Of a DNA stretch of 47,309 bases, positions 1,573 to 39,938 are shown in pieces; position 1 is the first letter of the stretch, and each line of letters starts with the position of its first letter. The notes below the pieces were generated by a model. The model did not search any database. It saw only the letters and a program-made list of their open reading frames with translations, and was not told the origin of the DNA. A program made the position numbers and the translations under genes. The DNA lies in the NCBI GenBank assembly GCA_002104905.1, contig MCFE01000674.1:1-47309 (forward strand), read 5' to 3'. This DNA comes from Basidiobolus meristosporus CBS 931.73 (lineage: Eukaryota > Fungi > Basidiobolomycota).

Positions 1573-4029
1573 CTAAATGTTCATACTGACTAGTCCTAAT
1601 TTTGACCAAAGATATTCAAACTTGTCTCTAGCTAATGGTTTGGTAAATATGTCTGCAATCATTTCATCTGTAGGACAGTAAACTAAGCTAACTAAGTTAT
1701 TCTCTATAGCTTCACGTATGAAGTGATGTCTAATATCTATGTGCTTGGTTCTAGCATGAAAAGTTGGATTTCTACCTAATTGTATACATCCTTGATTATC
1801 TTGAAATAAAGTAATAGGCATTTTTTGACATAGGCCTAAATCTGTCAAGAGTTTTCTTAACCACATTGCTTCTTTTGTAGCTTCACAGGCTGCCATATAC
1901 TCTGCCTCTGTAGTAGAAAGTGCTACGGTTGGTTGCTTTCTTGAATTACATGAAATTGCTCCTTTACAGTAAAGAAAGGTGTATCCTGTGGTGGATCTTC
2001 TGTCTTCCAAATTTCGTCCCCAATCTGCATCAGAGTATCCCACAAGATCTTGTTCTGAATCCTTATAAGTGTATCTTAAGCAAATATCAGCAGTTCCTTT
2101 TAGGTATCTAAAAATCCGCTTAACTGCTGCAATATGATCAGATCCATAGTTCTGATTATGTTGGCTGACAACTCCCACTGAATATGAGATATCTGGATGT
2201 GTTCCAAGCATGATATACATCAGACTGCCGACCATAGATTGATAAGGAAAGTCAGGGCTTTCAGATGGCACCAAGCTCTCTTGATTTGGTTCAGTTTTGA
2301 CCAAGTTAAGGTTTGTCTCCATTGGGGTAGCTGCCGGTTTACAGTCTTCCATTTTGTACTTCTTTAGTATATCTTGAATATACTTGGATTGGCTTAGGGT
2401 AATAGTCTGGGTACCTCTGTCTATGGAGAACTTAATCCCTAAGTAGTAACTAAGTTCTCCTAAATCAGACATCTTGAACTCCCTAGAAAGGCTCGATTTA
2501 GTCTCTTCCAATGTTTCTAGGTTATTGGCGGCTATAATAAGATCATCCACATATAGAGCTAATAGAACTGGATTTGCTCTATCTGGCTTATAGTATATAC
2601 TATAGTCAGCATTACTTCTTTTGAAACTCAAGGATTCCAAATAAGAATCTATCTTGCAGTTCCAGGCTCTTGGTGATTGTTTGAGACCATATAGTGACTT
2701 TTTAAGCTTGCAGACCAAATGGGGGTTATCTTGGTCAACAAACCCATCAGGCTGGTCCATATACACGTCCTCATCAAGTTCTCCATTCAAAAATGCAGTT
2801 TTTACATCCATTTGATGAATAAAAAACTTATATTTGGCTGCAATAGCCAATATTAATCTGATGGAATTAAACTTGGCTACCGGTGCAAAGGTCTCAGTAT
2901 AGTCAAGTCCTTTTGTTTGAGAGTATCCTTTGGCTACAAGTCTTGCTTTGTATCTTTCAATTGTGCCATCAGCCTTGTATTTTGTCTTGAAGACCCATCT
3001 GCATCCAATTGATTTTTGGTTGATTGGTAATTTGACTAAGTCCCAAGTTTGATTTTCCATCAGGGCCTGATATTCCTCAGTCATTGCAGATCTCCAAAAC
3101 TTTGTCTGAGGGCTATTTAGGGCCTCTTTTACAGTCTGGGGTTCATCAATATGGACTGAATAGGCATAGGCTAAGTTTGTACCCTCATTGATATAGTAAT
3201 TTGGGCTATTTCTTGTCTGATTGGATCTCCGGGCATTTGATACTGGAATGATCACTTCTGGGATATTCCTGGGCACTGATTCTGGCTGAACCACGGTTGT
3301 AGAGTCCTCTGGAGTGAAAAAATTTTCATTGTTTTGCTCTGATTCAATCTTGACAATTGGTGGACTTGAGATCAAATTTTCGTCATCATCTGATGTCATT
3401 TTTTGTGAAAATTTTGAATTTTCATCAAACAACACATCCCTGGACTTGATCAGCTTCTTTGCTTCGGTATTGTAGAGTCTGTATGCCTTACTCTCATTGC
3501 AGTAGCCCAAAAATATGCATTTTACACTTTTTGGCTCAAATTTTGACTGATTTCCGGCCAGTTTTTTGGCATATGCTGTACACCCAAATATTCTTAGATG
3601 TTCTGCACTTGGTCTGTATCCATACCATGCTTCAAATGGAGTAGAATCACGAAGTATTCTGTTATAACTCCTATTTTTAAGATATACAGCAGTGGCAACT
3701 GATTCCGCCCAAAAATCATAGGATAATTTTTGATCATGGATCATAGATCTTGCCATATCAATTATTGATCTGTTAGCTCGTTCTGCTACTCCATTTTGCT
3801 GTGGGGAGTATGGTACAATAGTCTCTTGCTGTATCCCATGAATTTTGCAGAAGTGGATGAAGAGTTTGGAGGTATATTCTCCACCATTGTCAGAGCGTAT
3901 TTTCTTGATTTTTTCACCAGTTTCTCTCTCCACCATGGCTTTAAACTCCCTGAACTTGAACAGAGCTTCTTCCTTTCTCTCCATGAAGTAGACCCATGTG
4001 TTAAGGATAAATTTTGCATAGGTCCACAC
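1573..4029 (-). CDS. copia pol C-terminal part: integrase core, reverse transcriptase, RNase H
   Basis: IRSDNGGEY and PQQNGVAERANR (integrase), QMDVKTAFLNG and LYVDDL (RT), GYSDADW and HIDIRHHFIRE (RNase H). Confidence 0.95.
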   Translation of the reverse strand: MWTYAKFILNTWVYFMERKEEALFKFREFKAMVERETGEKIKKIRSDNGGEYTSKLFIHFCKIHGIQQETIVPYSPQQNGVAERANRSIIDMARSMIHDQKLSYDFWAESVATAVYLKNRSYNRILRDSTPFEAWYGYRPSAEHLRIFGCTAYAKKLAGNQSKFEPKSVKCIFLGYCNESKAYRLYNTEAKKLIKSRDVLFDENSKFSQKMTSDDDENLISSPPIVKIESEQNNENFFTPEDSTTVVQPESVPRNIPEVIIPVSNARRSNQTRNSPNYYINEGTNLAYAYSVHIDEPQTVKEALNSPQTKFWRSAMTEEYQALMENQTWDLVKLPINQKSIGCRWVFKTKYKADGTIERYKARLVAKGYSQTKGLDYTETFAPVAKFNSIRLILAIAAKYKFFIHQMDVKTAFLNGELDEDVYMDQPDGFVDQDNPHLVCKLKKSLYGLKQSPRAWNCKIDSYLESLSFKRSNADYSIYYKPDRANPVLLALYVDDLIIAANNLETLEETKSSLSREFKMSDLGELSYYLGIKFSIDRGTQTITLSQSKYIQDILKKYKMEDCKPAATPMETNLNLVKTEPNQESLVPSESPDFPYQSMVGSLMYIMLGTHPDISYSVGVVSQHNQNYGSDHIAAVKRIFRYLKGTADICLRYTYKDSEQDLVGYSDADWGRNLEDRRSTTGYTFLYCKGAISCNSRKQPTVALSTTEAEYMAACEATKEAMWLRKLLTDLGLCQKMPITLFQDNQGCIQLGRNPTFHARTKHIDIRHHFIREAIENNLVSLVYCPTDEMIADIFTKPLARDKFEYLWSKLGLVSMNI

Positions 4030-5471
4030 AGATCTGAGTGAATTAGATCTAATTTTTTCTTAGTTTTGATTAACCCAGAGCTCTTGAATGGTTGTCTGGC
4101 TTGTTTCCCATATATGCAGGCTTCACAGTGCTCCAAAATAGCTGGGGGATCAATTTTCACTCCAGTAATTAGCTGATCTTTGATCATTTTACGCAAATAA
4201 TCAAAATTGATGTGTCCAAATCTCCTGTGCCAAAGCATTGGTGTTTCTTCATTTAAGTTACTTATATTGGCTTCCAGATATGATGGAATATAAGTCAACT
4301 TGTATAGATTCTGATCTCTGATGCCCAAAGCAATATGAGCACCATTTTGATCAGTGATCCTGCATCCAGAATTGTCAAAACTGAAACTGAGTCCTTCTGC
4401 TGTGGCCTTGCTTACAGAGAGTAGGTTCTTGGCTATTTCTGGTACATAGAGTACTTCTTTAAAGGTCAGTGTATGGCTTCCTTCACTGCTTCTAAGGTTT
4501 ACTTGGATAGTTCCTTCTCCCACTGCATCAAGTGTTCTATCGTCACCCATGAAAACCTTCTTAATTGGAATTTCTTGATATTGGGTAAAAAGTTCTTTTT
4601 GGTGTGTAAAGTGTTGAGAAGCTCCAGAGTCAATATACCACGTCTGAGAATCCTTGTTTGTGGTCATATTTAGTGCAGATATGAATAGTCTATCTTCAGT
4701 TGTTGCAGCATTTCCATATTCAGGCTTCTTTTGCTGATAATCTCTCTTTTTGAAACACCGGTCTGATGTGTGTCCTTTCCTTTTGCAGTAGTTGCAAAAT
4801 AGGTTGCTGTTGCCTTTGTAGGGTCTTGGGTACCTCCTTTGTTGGTTATCATTGCTTATTAAAGCATTTTCTTCTTCCTTCTTAATGGCGCTTGATTTTC
4901 TTAATTCTTCATCCAGGAGCCTTCCATATACGTAATTTAAGGTCAAATCTTCAGTTCTGGACTCTAGGGCTGATACAAGGCACTGAAACTCGTCTGTCAG
5001 GCTATTCAGGATGGTAACTATCACATCCTCATCAGTAGTTGGTATGCCCACAGATTCCATCTCATCTACCAGCAGGGTAATTCTGTTAATTAGATTTTTC
5101 ATTTCTTCTCCTGTCAGCATCTTTGTAGTAAAGAATTTTTGTCTCAGATACATCTTCTTGGCAGCTGAACATGACTGGTAGGTGTCTTCTAATGCTTTCC
5201 AGGCATTCTTTGCCGTTTTTGCTCTTGAGCATTGAATTAGCAATTTGTCCTTGACATTAAGGCAAATGCAGTTAAAGGCACTTTGTTCTTTCTTCTGGTA
5301 CTTTAAGGCTTCCTCTCCCACATTTTTAGGAGGGCATTCTTCTCCCATGACAATATCCCAAAGGCCTCTTTCTTGTAGCAGCATCTTCATCTTCACCTTC
5401 CACACTTGGTAGTTAGATCCATCCAACTTTTCAGCAGAGGGAAAAATTCCAGTAATAGCAGTAGTAGACAT
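3786..5471 (-). CDS. copia gag-protease-GAG-pre-integrase; frameshifted near 4000
   Basis: ATG at 5471. KLDGSNYQVWKVKMKMLLQERGLWDIV (gag), CNYCKRKGHTSDRC zinc knuckle, WYIDSGASQH protease, LWHRRFGH...CEAC, then HSDLCGP, after which the reading turns non-homologous. Confidence 0.93.
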   Translation of the reverse strand: MSTTAITGIFPSAEKLDGSNYQVWKVKMKMLLQERGLWDIVMGEECPPKNVGEEALKYQKKEQSAFNCICLNVKDKLLIQCSRAKTAKNAWKALEDTYQSCSAAKKMYLRQKFFTTKMLTGEEMKNLINRITLLVDEMESVGIPTTDEDVIVTILNSLTDEFQCLVSALESRTEDLTLNYVYGRLLDEELRKSSAIKKEEENALISNDNQQRRYPRPYKGNSNLFCNYCKRKGHTSDRCFKKRDYQQKKPEYGNAATTEDRLFISALNMTTNKDSQTWYIDSGASQHFTHQKELFTQYQEIPIKKVFMGDDRTLDAVGEGTIQVNLRSSEGSHTLTFKEVLYVPEIAKNLLSVSKATAEGLSFSFDNSGCRITDQNGAHIALGIRDQNLYKLTYIPSYLEANISNLNEETPMLWHRRFGHINFDYLRKMIKDQLITGVKIDPPAILEHCEACIYGKQARQPFKSSGLIKTKKKLDLIHSDLCGPMQNLSLTHGSTSWRERKKLCSSSGSLKPWWREKLVKKSRKYALTMVENIPPNSSSTSAKFMGYSKRLLYHTPHSKME

Positions 5472-5490
5472 TGCAGAGAGTGACAGCTTG

Positions 5491-5502
5491 GGGCTCATAA
5501 CC
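5491..5502 (-). promoter_or_regulatory. Primer-binding site complementary to the tRNAiMet anticodon arm (half-tRNA priming)
   Basis: Minus-strand GGTTATGAGCCC immediately follows the LTR end ...TTACAACA. It is complementary to GGGCUCAUAACC of fungal initiator tRNA. Confidence 0.85.
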
Positions 5503-5834
5503 TGTTGTAAGAGTCTTGGAGATATTGGAAGTGATTGGGAGAACAAGTAGATTGTGTGGTTTTCACTTAATGATTTATTGAATGTAAAAGTAGTATTTAT
5601 ACTTTTACCTGGTCTTGGCATTACAAACATGTAGAATAGGTTAAGGAAGGTCCCAAGAACATGTGTGCAAAGTTTGGGGCTGTTTGGACAACTTATCTAA
5701 TTTTCATGTTCTGGGTAAATATTCTAAGTAAATCCCGACAAGGAATTTGGTCAGTATTCTCTAGGATTTGAAGGTGATGATCTAAGTGACTAAGTTAGGT
5801 GAATATTTAGGTGGAAATACGAATTTTTACAACA
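5503..5834 (-). repeat. Complete 5' LTR of the copia element (332 bp)
   Basis: Bounded by perfect inverted termini TGTTGTAA...TTACAACA and adjacent to the PBS. Confidence 0.95.
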
Positions 5835-8981: not shown

Positions 8982-9566
8982 CTAGAATTTGGCAAACTGC
9001 TTGCTGCCTTGGGATTTCTTTTGCACCTTAAGAACATTGAAACGAACAGTTTTGGACAGGGGGCGGCATTGTCCGACAGTAACAACATCTCCGTTCTCAA
9101 CACGGAAACAGGGGGATACGTGAGCAGCGAGGTTCTTGTGGCGTTTCTCGTAACGATTGTACTTGGGGATATAATGAAGATATTCACGACGGATAATCAA
9201 GGTGTTCTTCATCTTGGTGGAGATAACGGTTCCGGAAAGGATACGTCCGCGAATACTGACATCACCGGTGAAGGGGCACTTTTTGTCGATGTAGGCACCT
9301 TCGATAGCCTCCTTGGGAGTCTTGAAGCCGAGACCGACATCCTTGTACCAGCGGAGGTTGCGGCTCTTCTTACTGCCGGCAAGCTTAGCATTCTGGAAAA
9401 TTCCGACTTGCTTCTGGAAAGCTCTTTCAACCTGAATTGAAGATGAACTTAGACGAAATTCGATTGTATCCTTGCATGCCCTTCCTGCGCTGCCTCATAT
9501 TTGGCAGCAGGATTAATGCACTTGAAGCGATAATCTCCTAGGAGCACTTACTTGTTCAGTGGACAT
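8982..9566 (-). CDS. RPS11: 40S ribosomal protein S11 (uS17)
   Basis: Exons 9566-9552 and 9431-8982 (GTAAGT...CAG intron) give 154 aa: [13 protein letters not shown]...[19 protein letters not shown]...[15 protein letters not shown]. Confidence 0.98.
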
Positions 9567-19433: not shown

Positions 19434-19936
19434 CTAAAACATATCGTCGGATTCCTTTTTGCCAGGCTTCTCAAGTTCATCCTTATCGAATAGTTGCTTG
19501 GCACGTCTAATGTCCTCACTCATGTAAAGCAACTCCTCCACTCTGGTAAGCTTCTTCGGATCCTTACGCAGAGCGAACTTAAAGTCCTCCACTTTGACTT
19601 TTCCACGTCTATCTGCTACTTTGGCTGCTTGTAGACACTAGGGGTTTGACGAGTTTAGTAAATAAGTCAAGAACATGGGGTTGTATTGCAAAGGCAGATC
19701 GAACCATTCCCGTTATGTACTCGATCACCAGATCTTCCATGACATTGACGGTGTCGGCTGAAGGATTAGGTACATCACCAAAACCATACATGAGCAGTCG
19801 CACTACATAAAGTTAAAGAATAATATGAACTGGCATGACAAAGGAATGCCTAAGATGAACCCTCGATGCTTGTTCAAAGGATACATTCTTTTGTGAAAAG
19901 GCGCTTTTTATTTCCGGTCTTCGGCTTCAGCTCCAT
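19434..19936 (-). CDS. TAF13: TFIID subunit 13 (117 aa)
   Basis: Exons 19936-19885, 19802-19705 and 19637-19434 give KRLFTKELRLLMYGFGDVPNP...EDFKFALRKDPKKLTRVEELL. Confidence 0.95.
19803..19884 (-). other. U12-type GT-AG intron (TAF13 intron 1)
   Basis: 5' site GTATCCTTT; branch-like TTCTTTAAC about 10 nt before the AG; splicing restores KE|LRLLMYGFGD. Confidence 0.85.
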
Positions 19937-20221: not shown

Positions 20222-22862
20222 ATGAATGCTGATTTAGAACAGATGTTTTTCGTGCCCTATGTACCTCCTGTTGGTGAAAAGTCGAGTCCACAATCGGAGA
20301 ACTGGCTACATGCACTGCAACTTTGGAACAATTCCCTTCGACGCTTGCTCCAAGTGACCGACCAGAAATTCCAAGAATTTCTAGCGGTTGATGAATCATT
20401 CCCCATTTTTGCCCAGACCTATCTGCGCTATCGCTCCCGGGAAATAGACTCGAGTTCAGACCCACACACTAGTGAAGCCGAGGCGGAGCTCTCCAAACGT
20501 GTATTGATGGTGTTTTTCAGGATTTCAAATGGCTCGGACTGGGCTTATATGGAGCTACTGCACCGAAGAAATATTCTGGTCGTCCCTATCCTTCTAGATT
20601 TGGCTTTGGCATACGCCGATTCAAACTCAAAAGTAACGCAATCAATCTTCGGTAAAATCTTGACCGCAGTACCTGTTCTGAAGGAGAGCTTCAAAGAGAG
20701 CATCGATTTCCTTGGGAAGTACATTAGCAAGATTAGCAATATATATCGAAACAGGACAGCTACTACGTACGACCTGGAAACTTGGAGAAAACATCTAATA
20801 GCATTGACAGATATCGTAAGAACTCTAGACAATGCTTGCAAGAGCTCGGAATTCATTGGGTCGCTGCTGAATGAGAACAAGGAGTTCATCACGCTTTTGT
20901 TTAACTTCTACGGCGAAGCCGTGTTAGCTATGCAAACCCAGCTGGCCGAAGCCGACCCCATCGAGAGCAAACCGCTCCGAACATTGCTTGTTCGTCTGAA
21001 GTATTCCATAATGTGCTTGCTTTACTCCATCCTAGATTCCTGCTTCTTCCGGCAATTCCGCGATGCCTCCGGCAACCAAGATGCGTTGGAACTCGCCATG
21101 GAGAATTGCTGCCAAACATTCATGTTCATCATGGATCTGACGAATGCCACCAAGGAAGCCGTTCCGTTCATCAACGCACCGCTACTCGTTGACACCGAAA
21201 TAGAACTTGACGTGAGCAAGGAGCTGACCAAAATCAAAGATGATATTTTCAATGGATATCCTTTACCTAACTGACTTGGGCCGATCGTTCCGAGCCTAGC
21301 TACCCACTCTCTTCATGATTTCTTAACTCTAGACAAACCGAGGATGCTCGTCTTGAATTTGTCATTACATCTTTAGGAGAGCTGAAGTCCAGATGTAGCA
21401 TTTCATACCGTACTTCAATTCTGCAAGGCAGAGAACCCGCCCCGTCCCAGCCATCTGTAAGCGATTCACGAATTTGACATTCACTCGGCATTGAACTCAA
21501 CGCGAATCCCCTTTTTCTAGGCCGAACAGAACGTCAACATATACGTTCAACGGTCGTCGTTGATCTCGCAAATCCAGGATTTATTCCCTCACCTCGGGGA
21601 TGGATTTCTTGAGGCGTGCCTTATCGAATTTAACGATGATGTTGAAAGAGTAATCATGCTACTGCTGGAGGACTCGTTACCTTCTAGCCTAAGTCAACTA
21701 GATCGATCAATGAAAAGGTATGCCACCCTTTCTCACTATCCATAGAGCCTCGTCTAAACTCGCTACATCAGATCACCGCTTGAGCCGGTCGATGCTCAAA
21801 TCGCAATTCCCGAACCGACCGCACCCTCAGGTTTGTCTCTTAACCTTTGCTTGCTTCTGGTTCCTACATGAGTAACAACCAAGTCATCCAGCTGACCTCA
21901 TCTCACAACGCCAAAATATATTCAACAACGATGAGTTTGATGTGTTTACCAGACGTGATGTCGACCTGAGCAAGGTCAGCTTTGGCAAGAAAGAGTAAGT
22001 AGTCGATCAACAACTCCTAGCGTTCAAGTCGGTTGTGGTTTTAACCCTTCCTTGTAGTCGGGGCAATGCCGACCAGATGCTAAATGACAAAGACTATGTT
22101 CAAAGCAACAAGCAATCTCTTCTCGAAACACTATTCAATGAAGACGATGACGAATATGACGATACATATGACGGGATCAACGAAGTGGGTGGCAGTTTAG
22201 ATGCTCACCTACTCGATGACTTGGACAACCAGGCAGAAGGCCAAGCTACCACAAAAAGTGTACGATACTCAGTTGAAATACGCATGTGTGATATGTTGTG
22301 TAAAGAGCAGTATATTCACTCAAACCCTATGATTTCTAGGAGGACCTTGGTACAATACATGAAGGTCTATTGGTTCAGGAAATGGCGTCTGATCCCTCTG
22401 TATTCGAGAGAAATGCCAAGGCACGTAAGTCTGCCCAACGCCAAAAGCTGAGAAATATTACCGGGATGTCGGACGAGCAAATCGAAGGGTGGTACGTCAT
22501 GCTCATGAGAAACGTAAGTCTTTTCCAGCAAAGCCACCTTCTCATGCTTCGAGAGTACTGAACCTGGTTGTCTTCACTAGGCCAAGAAAGGAAAACTAAT
22601 CGAGAAGTATGAGCTGCAAGGAAATCAAAACAGAGATGCAACAGCACAGACCCCGAGGAGTGATGAGCCTAGCTCTCGGGCGGCACATCCGCCTAAGAAT
22701 CCAAAAGCTCGTAATGGCAAGGTTGAGGACCCGTCCAAACAGCAATCCACAAATATGTCGGATCGAGATAAGGCGCGTAAGGAGAAATCCAAGGGTAAAC
22801 GAGCCAACCATAACCGGAAGGGTCAACACATGAAGAAGATGGCATTGAACAATGCGGTATAA
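20222..22862 (+). CDS. ASCC2: ASCC2 / Cue3-like CUE-domain protein, multi-exon
   Basis: CUE domain ISQIQDLFPHLGDGFLEACL...VIMLLLEDSLP, acidic EDDDEYDDTYD motif, basic C-terminus KSKGKRANHNRK. Confidence 0.9.
21256..21338 (+). other. U12-type AT-AC intron (ASCC2 intron 1)
   Basis: Starts ATATCCTTT; branch TTCTTAAC (21320-21327); ends AC at 21337-21338. The spliced frame reads DIFNG|EDARLEF. Confidence 0.85.
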
Positions 22863-23696
22863 CCATGATGAATGTATTTCAGGTGTTCCTGAGTGTAACA
22901 TTAATTAAATCACGCATAATTTAAGCCAGATCGGATGTAGTGGGATAAATCCGATGATGGGGACTTCTTTTGCTTCTTCCATAATATTTGGCCCAGAGCA
23001 GAGGACCATTTTCTAGTGGTTGAACTCTAAACATCACACTCCACCCCACCCGGAAGTTGATTGGATTAGTGCTTGGCTGAGGTAGATTACACAACGTTCT
23101 GGGCTGTCTCGCTAAAAGAGCTCGTGACTGTCTGAATTCTATTATTGTTTATCACATTCATTCAGAAATTTATAGTTCGGTTAGTTGGGGCAATTCTGGC
23201 ACTGCAACTGCATTTACACCACACACAACTCCGTCTACTTGGATAGCTTTGAGCAGCACACCCTCATCTACCAACCCAAACTCTATCGCTTCCTACTAGA
23301 AGCATGCCTTTTGCACTTGAATAGATGCTTTGTGGGGCGGCAGTATCGATTCAGGCGTTACTAAAAACTTTCTTGGATTGGAATCATTACTGTAATTCAA
23401 GACTAGTGTGTTGTACTTACTAACCGAAGTAACTGGCAGCCAGTGAGGTGACTTGATTTTCTCCTCCCTGGGAAAAAGCAACCAATTACACCTCTTGAAA
23501 AATGGCTAATGACGGATGCCCAATCGAGTGCAAAAAAATATTTCTTGATCACAATTTGGGATTGTGCATATATGCTCCTGCACACTTGGGCGACTGAGGA
23601 TTTGCTTTCTGGTGCCCATTCAATTAGACTATCCTCTACAAAAGAGGATTATACAACTTCCATACACTTTTGATATCACTTCCGGTTGCTTCAAAT

Positions 23697-25156
23697 ATGT
23701 TCACCTTGTCTCATAGGGTATTGTTAGCTCCTCGTACTGCTAGCGTGCTTAATGCTTTAAAGCGCTCATTCAGCGGGGTTTCTAGCGTTAACACGCTCAG
23801 TGGCTCTCTTGCCTCTTCGCGACCCAAACCTGTCCGGGCTCACTTTGCTGGTAAAGCGAGAAATTGGACTCAAGCTGTACAGGAGGCAGAGGTACTTGTC
23901 CAACACCAACCTACAATCAAGCTCGAGCCAAAGCAGTTGCTCGGAACCAACATCACCCAGATTTCCCCAAACATCAAAAACTTGCTGGAAACCAAAGATA
24001 GCCAGCTTTACTTGACAAGCAAGTATTATTTTGAGCAACCTGGGAAACATGTTCGCCCACTGCTAGTATTATTGATGTCCCAAGCAACTAGCCTGGCCGC
24101 TAAGGAGTCGTCGTTCAAACCTCTCGAGGCTTACGAGTCTATGGACACCAATTTAAGCGCCAATAGTGAGTCTTGGCTAAGAGCAGACAAAGGGGATTTT
24201 TATCGAAAGTCCATAAGCTCCGAGGGTTGTGTTATTCTACCTACCCAGCGTCGTCTTGCAGAGATTGCGGAGATGATACACACTGCATCCCTGGTTCACG
24301 ATGACGTGGTCGACGATTCTCCAACTCGCCGTGGCTCCGCCTCCACCAACGCTACATTTGGAAATAAGCAGGCAGTGCTCGCGGGGGACTTCATTTTGGC
24401 CCGTACTTCGATAGCTCTTGCCCGACTCAGAAATCCTGAGGTAATCGAACTTTTGGCTAAGGTCATTGAAGACCTTGTAGACGGTGAGTTCAAGCAGCTG
24501 AAGAACACCAACCAGAATAGCCATGAGAAACCGAACCTATCCACATTCGACCATTACATGGAAAAGACCTATTTGAAAACTGCCAGTCTAATCGCGAACA
24601 GTTGCAAAGCCACTGCTTTACTCGGCGGAAACACCAGTTCTGTGGCCGAACTGGCATATTCATTTGGTAGAGATCTTGGCCTAGCGTTCCAGGTAAATAT
24701 CCCCTCAAGCTCTTGAGTTCAGGCTGCAGCCACTAACATGTCCCATCTGGGAATAGCTAGTAGATGACATGCTCGACTACACCACCACTGCGGACGAGTT
24801 TGGAAAGCCCGTGGGTGCTGATTTAAAGCTTGGTCTGGCCACTGCGCCAGTTCTGTTTGCTTGGGAGGAGTTCCCTGAGCTTGGTCAATTGATCAAGCGC
24901 AAGTTCTCTCAGTCAGGGGATATTGAAAAGGTGGTGTATTTCAGCCTGTTGGATATATTACCCGTCATATCTAACCTGTATATATGTTATCAAGGCTTAC
25001 CAACTTGTGTGGCGCAGCAACGGGATCCGACAAACGCGTAAATTGGCGGAGTCTTTCTGCCAAAAAGCCATCAATGCCGTTCAACAATTGCCGCCCTCTC
25101 AAGCACAAGAGGCCTTAATCCAGTTAGCACACAAGGTGGTGACTAGAACTCATTAG
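23697..25156 (+). CDS. COQ1: Mitochondrial polyprenyl-diphosphate synthase
   Basis: Exons 23697-24692, 24757-24930 and 24995-25156. GKHVRP, VHDDVVD (FARM), KTASL and FQ|LVDDMLD (SARM); Arg/Ser-rich presequence. Confidence 0.96.
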
Positions 25157-39130: not shown

Positions 39131-39938
39131 TTGTTAGACTGCATGAGCTTCTTTAGACAGGGTATTACTGGAATATATCTGGAGTGTGAACAATACTTTC
39201 CTTAAATGGTGGTAAATTTTTGACAATTTGGACATGGTCCAATGGTGGTATTTTTGGATGTTAATGCCATGCAACTGCTAACATATGCTGGAAACAGGTC
39301 AGTCTCTGGGTCATATATTACTGGTTGCATGGCAGTTGTCCACTTGTACTATGTACATGGTAACTGGCATCCCTGGATGATTTTGGCAAGAAGTAGTAGT
39401 AGAACCTCAAATTCTCCCATTACTGATATTAGTAGAAACACGCCACTTCTCTAGCCACAACATTATATCATTCACCAGTAGATGGATTACTGGGCTCACT
39501 TGGCTCCATAAAATATCCTTGGCATTGGTATAGCTTTGCAATATTTGTTGGACTGCATCAGCTTCCTCAGACAGGGTATGACCTGAATATATCCAGAGTG
39601 TGAGCAATGTTTTCCCTCCATGGTGGTGGATTCCTGACATTTTGGACATGTTGCAATGGTAGCATTTTTGTATGTGAATGCCATGCACCTGTTGATGCAT
39701 GCTGGAATCAGGACAGTCTCTGGATCATATGTTGCCAGCTGCATGACGGTTGTTCACTTGTACCATGTACATGTTAAGTTGCATCCTGATATGATTTTGG
39801 CAAGAAGGAGTAATAAGTCCTCAAAGCCCCCATAACTGTTATTAGTGGAAACATGCCACTTCTCTAGCCACAACATTATACCAATCACCAGTAGAAGGAT
39901 ACTGGGCTCACTTGGCTCCATAAGGTATCCTTGGCATT
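39130..39938 (-). pseudogene. Two diverged tandem copies (about 413-bp period) of a CACTA-like transposase N-terminal fragment
   Basis: 39130-39526 aligns to 39544-39938. Translation PACINRCMAFTYKNATIATCPKC...YIQVIPCLRKL fits the Cys-rich C..N.CMAF...CPxC transposase motif. Confidence 0.6.

Follow-up and report, generated by a model that had tools for sequence, protein, structure and literature searches.

We describe here a segment of 83 nt in the genome of Basidiobolus meristosporus that is very probably a genuine U12-dependent AT-AC intron, residing in the Basidiobolus orthologue of the ASCC2/CUE3 gene. It was found in a stretch of 47,309 nt (hereafter, the window). We favour this reading because four lines of sequence evidence point to it, i.e. 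the splice signals, the restored reading frame, the homology of the sequences flanking the junction on either side, and the traces that the element seems to have left in the protein models of related fungi.

The predicted intron and the gene that carries it

The predicted intron and its signals are the following:

21256-21338, + strand: U12-type AT-AC intron, 83 nt, phase 2, defined by its donor, branch site and AC end
21256-21264, + strand: U12-type 5' splice site ATATCCTTT, read in the sequence
21320-21327, + strand: branch-site motif TTCTTAAC, differing from TCCTTAAC in one letter; A21326 is the presumed branch point
21337-21338, + strand: 3' terminal AC, placed by sequence, frame and homologue profile

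The donor lies directly 3' of the end of exon 1 (...GAT ATT TTC AAT GG). It fits the pattern [A/G]TATCCTT from intron position +1, and the sequence thus bears out the first-pass annotation, which had recognized a canonical U12 5' site at 21256. The branch-site motif deviates from TCCTTAAC at a single position, and its A falls within the expected distance of about 10-15 nt from the 3' splice site: in line with the 12-13 nt given by the same annotation, 12 nt separate the presumed branch A (21326) from the end of the intron (21338). The termini are AT (21256-21257) and AC (21337-21338), there is no polypyrimidine tract, and the spacer between the branch site and the 3' site (TCTAGACAA) is not rich in pyrimidines.

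If the exon-1 frame, which opens at 20222, is left unspliced, it continues into YPLPN* and meets a stop at 21272-21274. Excision of 21256-21338 rebuilds a Gly codon (GG/C), after which the protein continues as EDARLEF... with the frame kept; the proposed junction DIFNG/EDARLEF is indeed in frame. All combinations of GT or GC with AG, and of AT with AC or AG, that leave an open frame were listed by script. Three possible ends follow TTCTTAAC, namely a TAG ending at 21332, an AC at 21333-21334 and the AC at 21337-21338. The nearer AC was rejected, since it is out of frame and runs into a stop, the stop having been noted already from the letters alone.

The gene in which this segment lies was modelled as follows:

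20222-21255, + strand: exon 1, 344 codons plus the GG of the split Gly codon (open reading frame, match to human ASCC2)
21339-21456, + strand: exon 2, whose C completes the Gly codon and is followed by EDARLEFVITSLGELK... (frame, homologue profile from column 40)
21457-21520, + strand: intron 2, an ordinary GT-AG intron (GTAAGC...CTAG) of 64 nt
21521-21717, + strand: exon 3, CUE domain (Pfam PF02845)
21772-21830, + strand: exon 4 (frame bookkeeping)
21892-21994, + strand: exon 5 (frame bookkeeping)
22058-22259, + strand: exon 6 (frame bookkeeping)
22340-22513, + strand: exon 7 (frame bookkeeping)
22581-22862, + strand: exon 8 (frame bookkeeping)

Exons 4-8 are set apart from one another by GT-AG introns of 61-80 nt, and the range is 54-80 nt once the intron before exon 4 is included. 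The identification of the gene as ASCC2/CUE3, made in the first-pass annotation, is upheld by two of its exons. Exon 1 encodes the N-terminal helical domain of ASCC2, as shown by its match to human ASCC2 (PDB 6yxq chain B; phmmer, E 9.3e-10, query residues 8-263), and 3' of it exon 3 encodes a CUE domain (PF02845, E 5.4e-11; score 42.4 bits, cut-off 21.1), with 56-68% identity to the CUE region of homologues. The C-terminal motifs NIFNNDEFDVF and MSDEQIEGWYVM also agree with homologues. The protein is similar to human ASCC2 (6yxq_B) and yeast Cue3 in the order of its parts (an N-terminal ASCC2 domain, then a CUE domain), whereas identity is low. No exact copy of the 350-aa read-through ORF was present in the protein collection that was looked up.

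Several other features of the gene and its surroundings were recorded. The position of the GT-AG intron at 22514-22580 (+ strand, donor GTAAGT), which follows ...MLMRN, seems to be conserved: the Paraphysoderma protein P0009 and the Umbelopsis-like fragment P0042 both end in ...RNVS..., i.e. the read-through of AAC GTA AGT at the same codon. A 348-aa ORF located 3' of ASCC2 (23670-24716, + strand) carries LVHDDVVDD, a motif characteristic of polyprenyl diphosphate synthases. On the - strand, 1573-5630 is occupied by two long ORFs (818 and 614 aa) that overlap each other; they lie within an AT-richer stretch (GC about 0.39) and are possibly a retroelement.

The junction was compared with uninterrupted proteins by means of a 72-column profile, built from mutually gapless segments of six homologues (Umbelopsis nana, Calcarisporiella thermophila, Actinomortierella ambigua, Paraphysoderma sedebokerense and two more) and searched against stop-to-stop peptides of the three forward frames. 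The exon-1 fragment fills columns 5-39, with ...DDIFNG as its last residues (E 1.4e-10), and the alignment of the exon-2 frame sets in at column 40, with EDARLEF (E 4.6e-4). Columns 39 and 40 are adjacent across the junction; therefore, splicing at the AC keeps the spacing of the homologues exactly. The tail of exon 1 aligns to fungal homologues up to its final residue. Across the junction, Umbelopsis nana P0041 has FHGEDEQLEF and Calcarisporiella P0012 has FAGDEARLDY, against FNG/EDARLEF in the window. Taken alone, exon 2 resembles homologues only weakly: it gave a 17-aa match to a homologue with 41% identity, and BLASTP of exon 2 against Umbelopsis P0041, with composition statistics on, produced no alignment.

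The profile also bears on the 3' site. A U12-type intron could in principle start at the same donor and end at the AG at 21331-21332 (AT-AG, 77 nt), adding Gln-Thr to the protein; such a splice form might be the predominant one or a minor isoform. This AG is in frame and leaves no stop, and AT-AG minor introns are known elsewhere. U12 3' sites generally lie at least about 10 nt from the branch A. The AG at 21332 lies 6 nt from it and is too near, as the first-pass annotation had already objected, and the added QT would be a two-residue insertion relative to the six gaplessly aligned homologues, overlapping columns held by N-G. We consider such an AT-AG intron very unlikely, and retain the AC at 21337-21338 as the predicted 3' end.

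Frequency of the U12 signal and a second minor-type intron in TAF13

The frequency of such signals in the window was assessed with a composite pattern, consisting of RTATCCTT, a branch site that differs from TCCTTAAC at one position at most and, 10-15 nt past the branch A, the matching end dinucleotide. Two such signals are present in the window, one in the ASCC2 intron and one in a neighbouring TAF13 intron. In 300 dinucleotide shuffles the mean was 0.097 occurrences, and only one shuffle of the 300 reached two; the composite U12 signal exceeds chance. Moreover, both matches fall exactly where a reading frame needs bridging. The second one is:

19803-19884, - strand: U12-type GT-AG intron of TAF13, phase 1, with donor GTATCCTTT and branch site TTCTTTAAC

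TAF13 is oriented divergently to ASCC2/CUE3, and its intron, in which TTCTTTAAC lies 10 nt before the AG, is the second of minor type at this locus. The spliced product reads ...KKRLFTKE/L/RLLMYGFGD. Exon 2 of TAF13 begins exactly at residue 37 of the human protein (RCMMYGFGD) and matches the Pfam family TFIID-18kDa, and the end of the upstream exon (...KKRLFTKE) presumably corresponds to the human residues just before residue 37. A PDB search with the 31-aa piece encoded by exon 1, a query too short for this purpose, gave no match.

The donor word RTATCCTT alone is present 10 times in the window, against 3.4 expected, and most of these copies were rejected as intron donors. The copy at 9244 (- strand) lies within the coding sequence of a ribosomal protein (about 9100-9300, - strand; we assume it to be uS17/RPS11-like), which holds GTATCCTT by chance and so warns that the donor word by itself is not diagnostic. 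Those at 2923 (+) and 8204 (-) are antisense to long ORFs, and those at 9466, 33917, 39513, 39902 and 39925 have no matching branch site. Within 39513-39932 the + strand has two copies, 412 nt apart, of a word roughly 28 nt long, ACTTGGCTCCATAA-R-RTATCCTTGGCATT, and a related GTATCCTT site is found nearby on the - strand, at 39902. This word looks like a local repeat rather than a set of introns.

Footprints of the intron in related fungi

A representative search with exon 1 identified 39 relatives, with 20-34% identity, and nearly all of the named ones are early-diverging fungi. In eight homologue models, the residues G-Y-P-F/L stand precisely at the junction column:

P0004, Geosiphon pyriformis
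P0007, Dentiscutata heterogama
P0045, Paraglomus brasilianum
P0036, Apophysomyces ossiformis
P0002, from a Logan assembly
P0006, from a JGI metagenome
P0044, from a JGI metagenome
P0046

Right after this peptide the mutual similarity of the models is gone; they stop 0-30 residues later and have no CUE domain. Translated, GG ATATCCTT-T/N gives G-Y-P-F/L, i.e. a same-phase read-through into the U12 donor, and the window gives GYPLPN* in the same frame. Conservation of the splice signal can hence be followed in these eight models through its translated form, which points to a retained GG ATATCCTT. Apart from Paraglomus and one fragment, a word search with the alignment yielded no new sequences, and a metagenome scan with an alignment of four sequences found one locus of 1.1 kb, covering residues 27-148, off the junction.

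Another kind of distortion is visible in three models from Glomeromycota, those of Funneliformis (P0003), Ambispora (P0013) and Scutellospora (P0038). They reach the CUE domain, and around the site each of them misses its own set of conserved residues, numbering from about 4 to about 28. Deletions of this sort are what one would expect if a GT-AG intron were imposed where an AT-AC one lies. The closest protein to exon 1 in the word search, and its sole match, comes from Basidiobolus ranarum (P0001, K7432_011916; 275 aa, 74% identity). It follows the ASCC2 protein of the window for about 225 residues and then diverges into a peptide resembling a wrong reading frame of the same DNA; because of this switch, P0001 is mis-modelled and truncated, upstream of the junction. 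The warning of the first-pass annotation that predictors limited to GT-AG introns would truncate or mis-model the gene has proved apt, since truncations or deletions occur here in no fewer than 11 public models from relatives, and that of B. ranarum is garbled further upstream.

These observations bear on two further readings of the locus. According to one of them, the U12-like motifs are coincidental, and an ordinary U2-type intron is removed instead, either between the GT at 21212 and the AG at 21341-21342 (131 nt) or as a GC-AG intron. GTGAGC at 21212 is a passable donor, and its pairing with the AG at 21342 is in frame. The first-pass annotation had stated that the exon-1 ORF meets its stop with no usable GT donor near, and this holds: no GT dinucleotide occurs between 21214 and 21274, and the sole nearby one, at 21212, can be set aside. 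Its use would cost 16 residues (VSKELTKIKDDIFNGE), conserved in homologues up to the Gly; in this region Funneliformis caledonium P0003 is 63% identical over 27 aa, and the stretch aligns also to P0009, P0017, P0008, P0014, P0020 and P0012. The acceptor, ACAAACCGAG, is poor. In addition, the composite U12 signal is rare by chance, and the G-Y-P-F/L peptide of the eight relatives places a conserved ATATCCTT at this very codon. An ordinary intron is in our view even less probable than the AT-AG one. The least probable reading is that splicing is absent, in which case the gene would end at 21272-21274 (350 aa, without a CUE domain) or the locus would represent a decaying copy: the ORF does meet a stop six codons past the donor, and minor introns are often inefficiently spliced, but the same strand carries seven more exons 3' of this point, whose frames are intact, whose introns are GT-AG and whose sequence is strongly conserved (the CUE domain, E 5e-11, and the C-terminal motifs), and full-length homologues have the same architecture.

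The U12-dependent AT-AC intron at 21256-21338 thus remains the preferred interpretation. On the evidence of the G-Y-P-F/L footprints and the deleted Glomeromycota models, it appears to be old and shared, i.e. common to Basidiobolus, several Glomeromycota and at least one species of Mucorales, and its origin probably lies before the divergence of Zoopagomycota from Mucoromycota. Umbelopsis-like ORFs of 500 aa on Logan contigs cross the site uninterrupted and read into a later intron, which suggests a precise loss of the intron in that lineage. It has probably been lost in some lineages, Umbelopsis being an example.

Minor splicing in Basidiobolus and implications of the ASCC2 intron

The presence of such an intron is in accordance with what has been published on its host. 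B. meristosporus has 249 minor introns (0.554%), the highest density in fungi (PMC10639083), and possesses U11, U12 and U6atac together with a putative U4atac (PMC11347168). A search with Rfam revealed no minor snRNA genes within the 47,309 nt of the window. The view expressed in the first-pass annotation, that U12 introns are absent from Dikarya and kept in some early-diverging fungi, agrees with the report of no convincing minor introns in Dikarya (PMC10639083). In the literature the genus already ranks as the fungus richest in minor introns, and the ASCC2 element would be one example of these; our literature search found nothing linking ASCC2 with minor introns.

The ASCC2 element is of the same kind as the minor introns described in B. 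meristosporus and Rhizophagus irregularis (Larue and Roy 2023, PMC10639083; Olthof et al. 2024, PMC11347168), with which it shares the consensus signals, a small size and a phase other than zero. The catalogues of these two studies depend on annotated introns, and the models of relatives are broken at the ASCC2 site. The classic AT-AC U12 introns known from animals and plants (Hall and Padgett 1994; Tarn and Steitz 1996, both as cited in PMC10639083) have in common with it the ATATCCTT donor, the AC end, the lack of a polypyrimidine tract and a branch site that resembles TCCTTAAC and lies 10-15 nt from the 3' end. In comparison, the ASCC2 intron is much shorter (83 nt) and resides in a fungus, and its branch site has a T in place of the first C of the consensus.

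By analogy with established minor splicing, U11 and later U6atac would pair with ATATCCTTT. U12 would pair with TTCTTAAC, bulging the A at 21326, and at the mismatched position of the branch site the T opposite G could still pair as a G-U wobble. The 3' site would be chosen by distance, at the AC 12 nt past the branch A. Ligation would then rebuild the Gly codon (GG/C) and join the N-terminal ASCC2 domain to the linker and the ubiquitin-binding CUE domain.

A more far-reaching proposal is that the intron is ancient (older than the Zoopagomycota-Mucoromycota split and possibly present also in animals or plants) and that its slow or regulated removal acts as a switch. As a joint claim this is unlikely, and we put it forward only tentatively. 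In this reading, the intron precisely separates the ASCC3-binding N-terminal domain from the ubiquitin-binding CUE module. If a switch of this type did exist, retention of the intron would lead to a stop six codons in, and thus to an ASCC2 without its CUE domain or to a degraded transcript, and the capacity for ribosome quality control and alkylation repair would be tied to the activity of the minor spliceosome.

The analysis provides a corrected ASCC2 model for B. meristosporus, with 8 exons and 722 codons. Knowledge of minor splicing itself is unchanged by the ASCC2 intron. A single conserved AT-AC intron would account for the truncation or distortion of the public ASCC2 models of at least 11 relatives, mostly named early-diverging fungi, and counts of minor introns based on annotation are likely to be too low in these fungi. 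The trailing G-Y-P-F/L peptide is a simple footprint, by which unannotated minor introns may be found from protein databases alone. The ASCC2 intron may therefore serve as one more orthologous minor intron with which retention and loss can be followed across the early fungal lineages.
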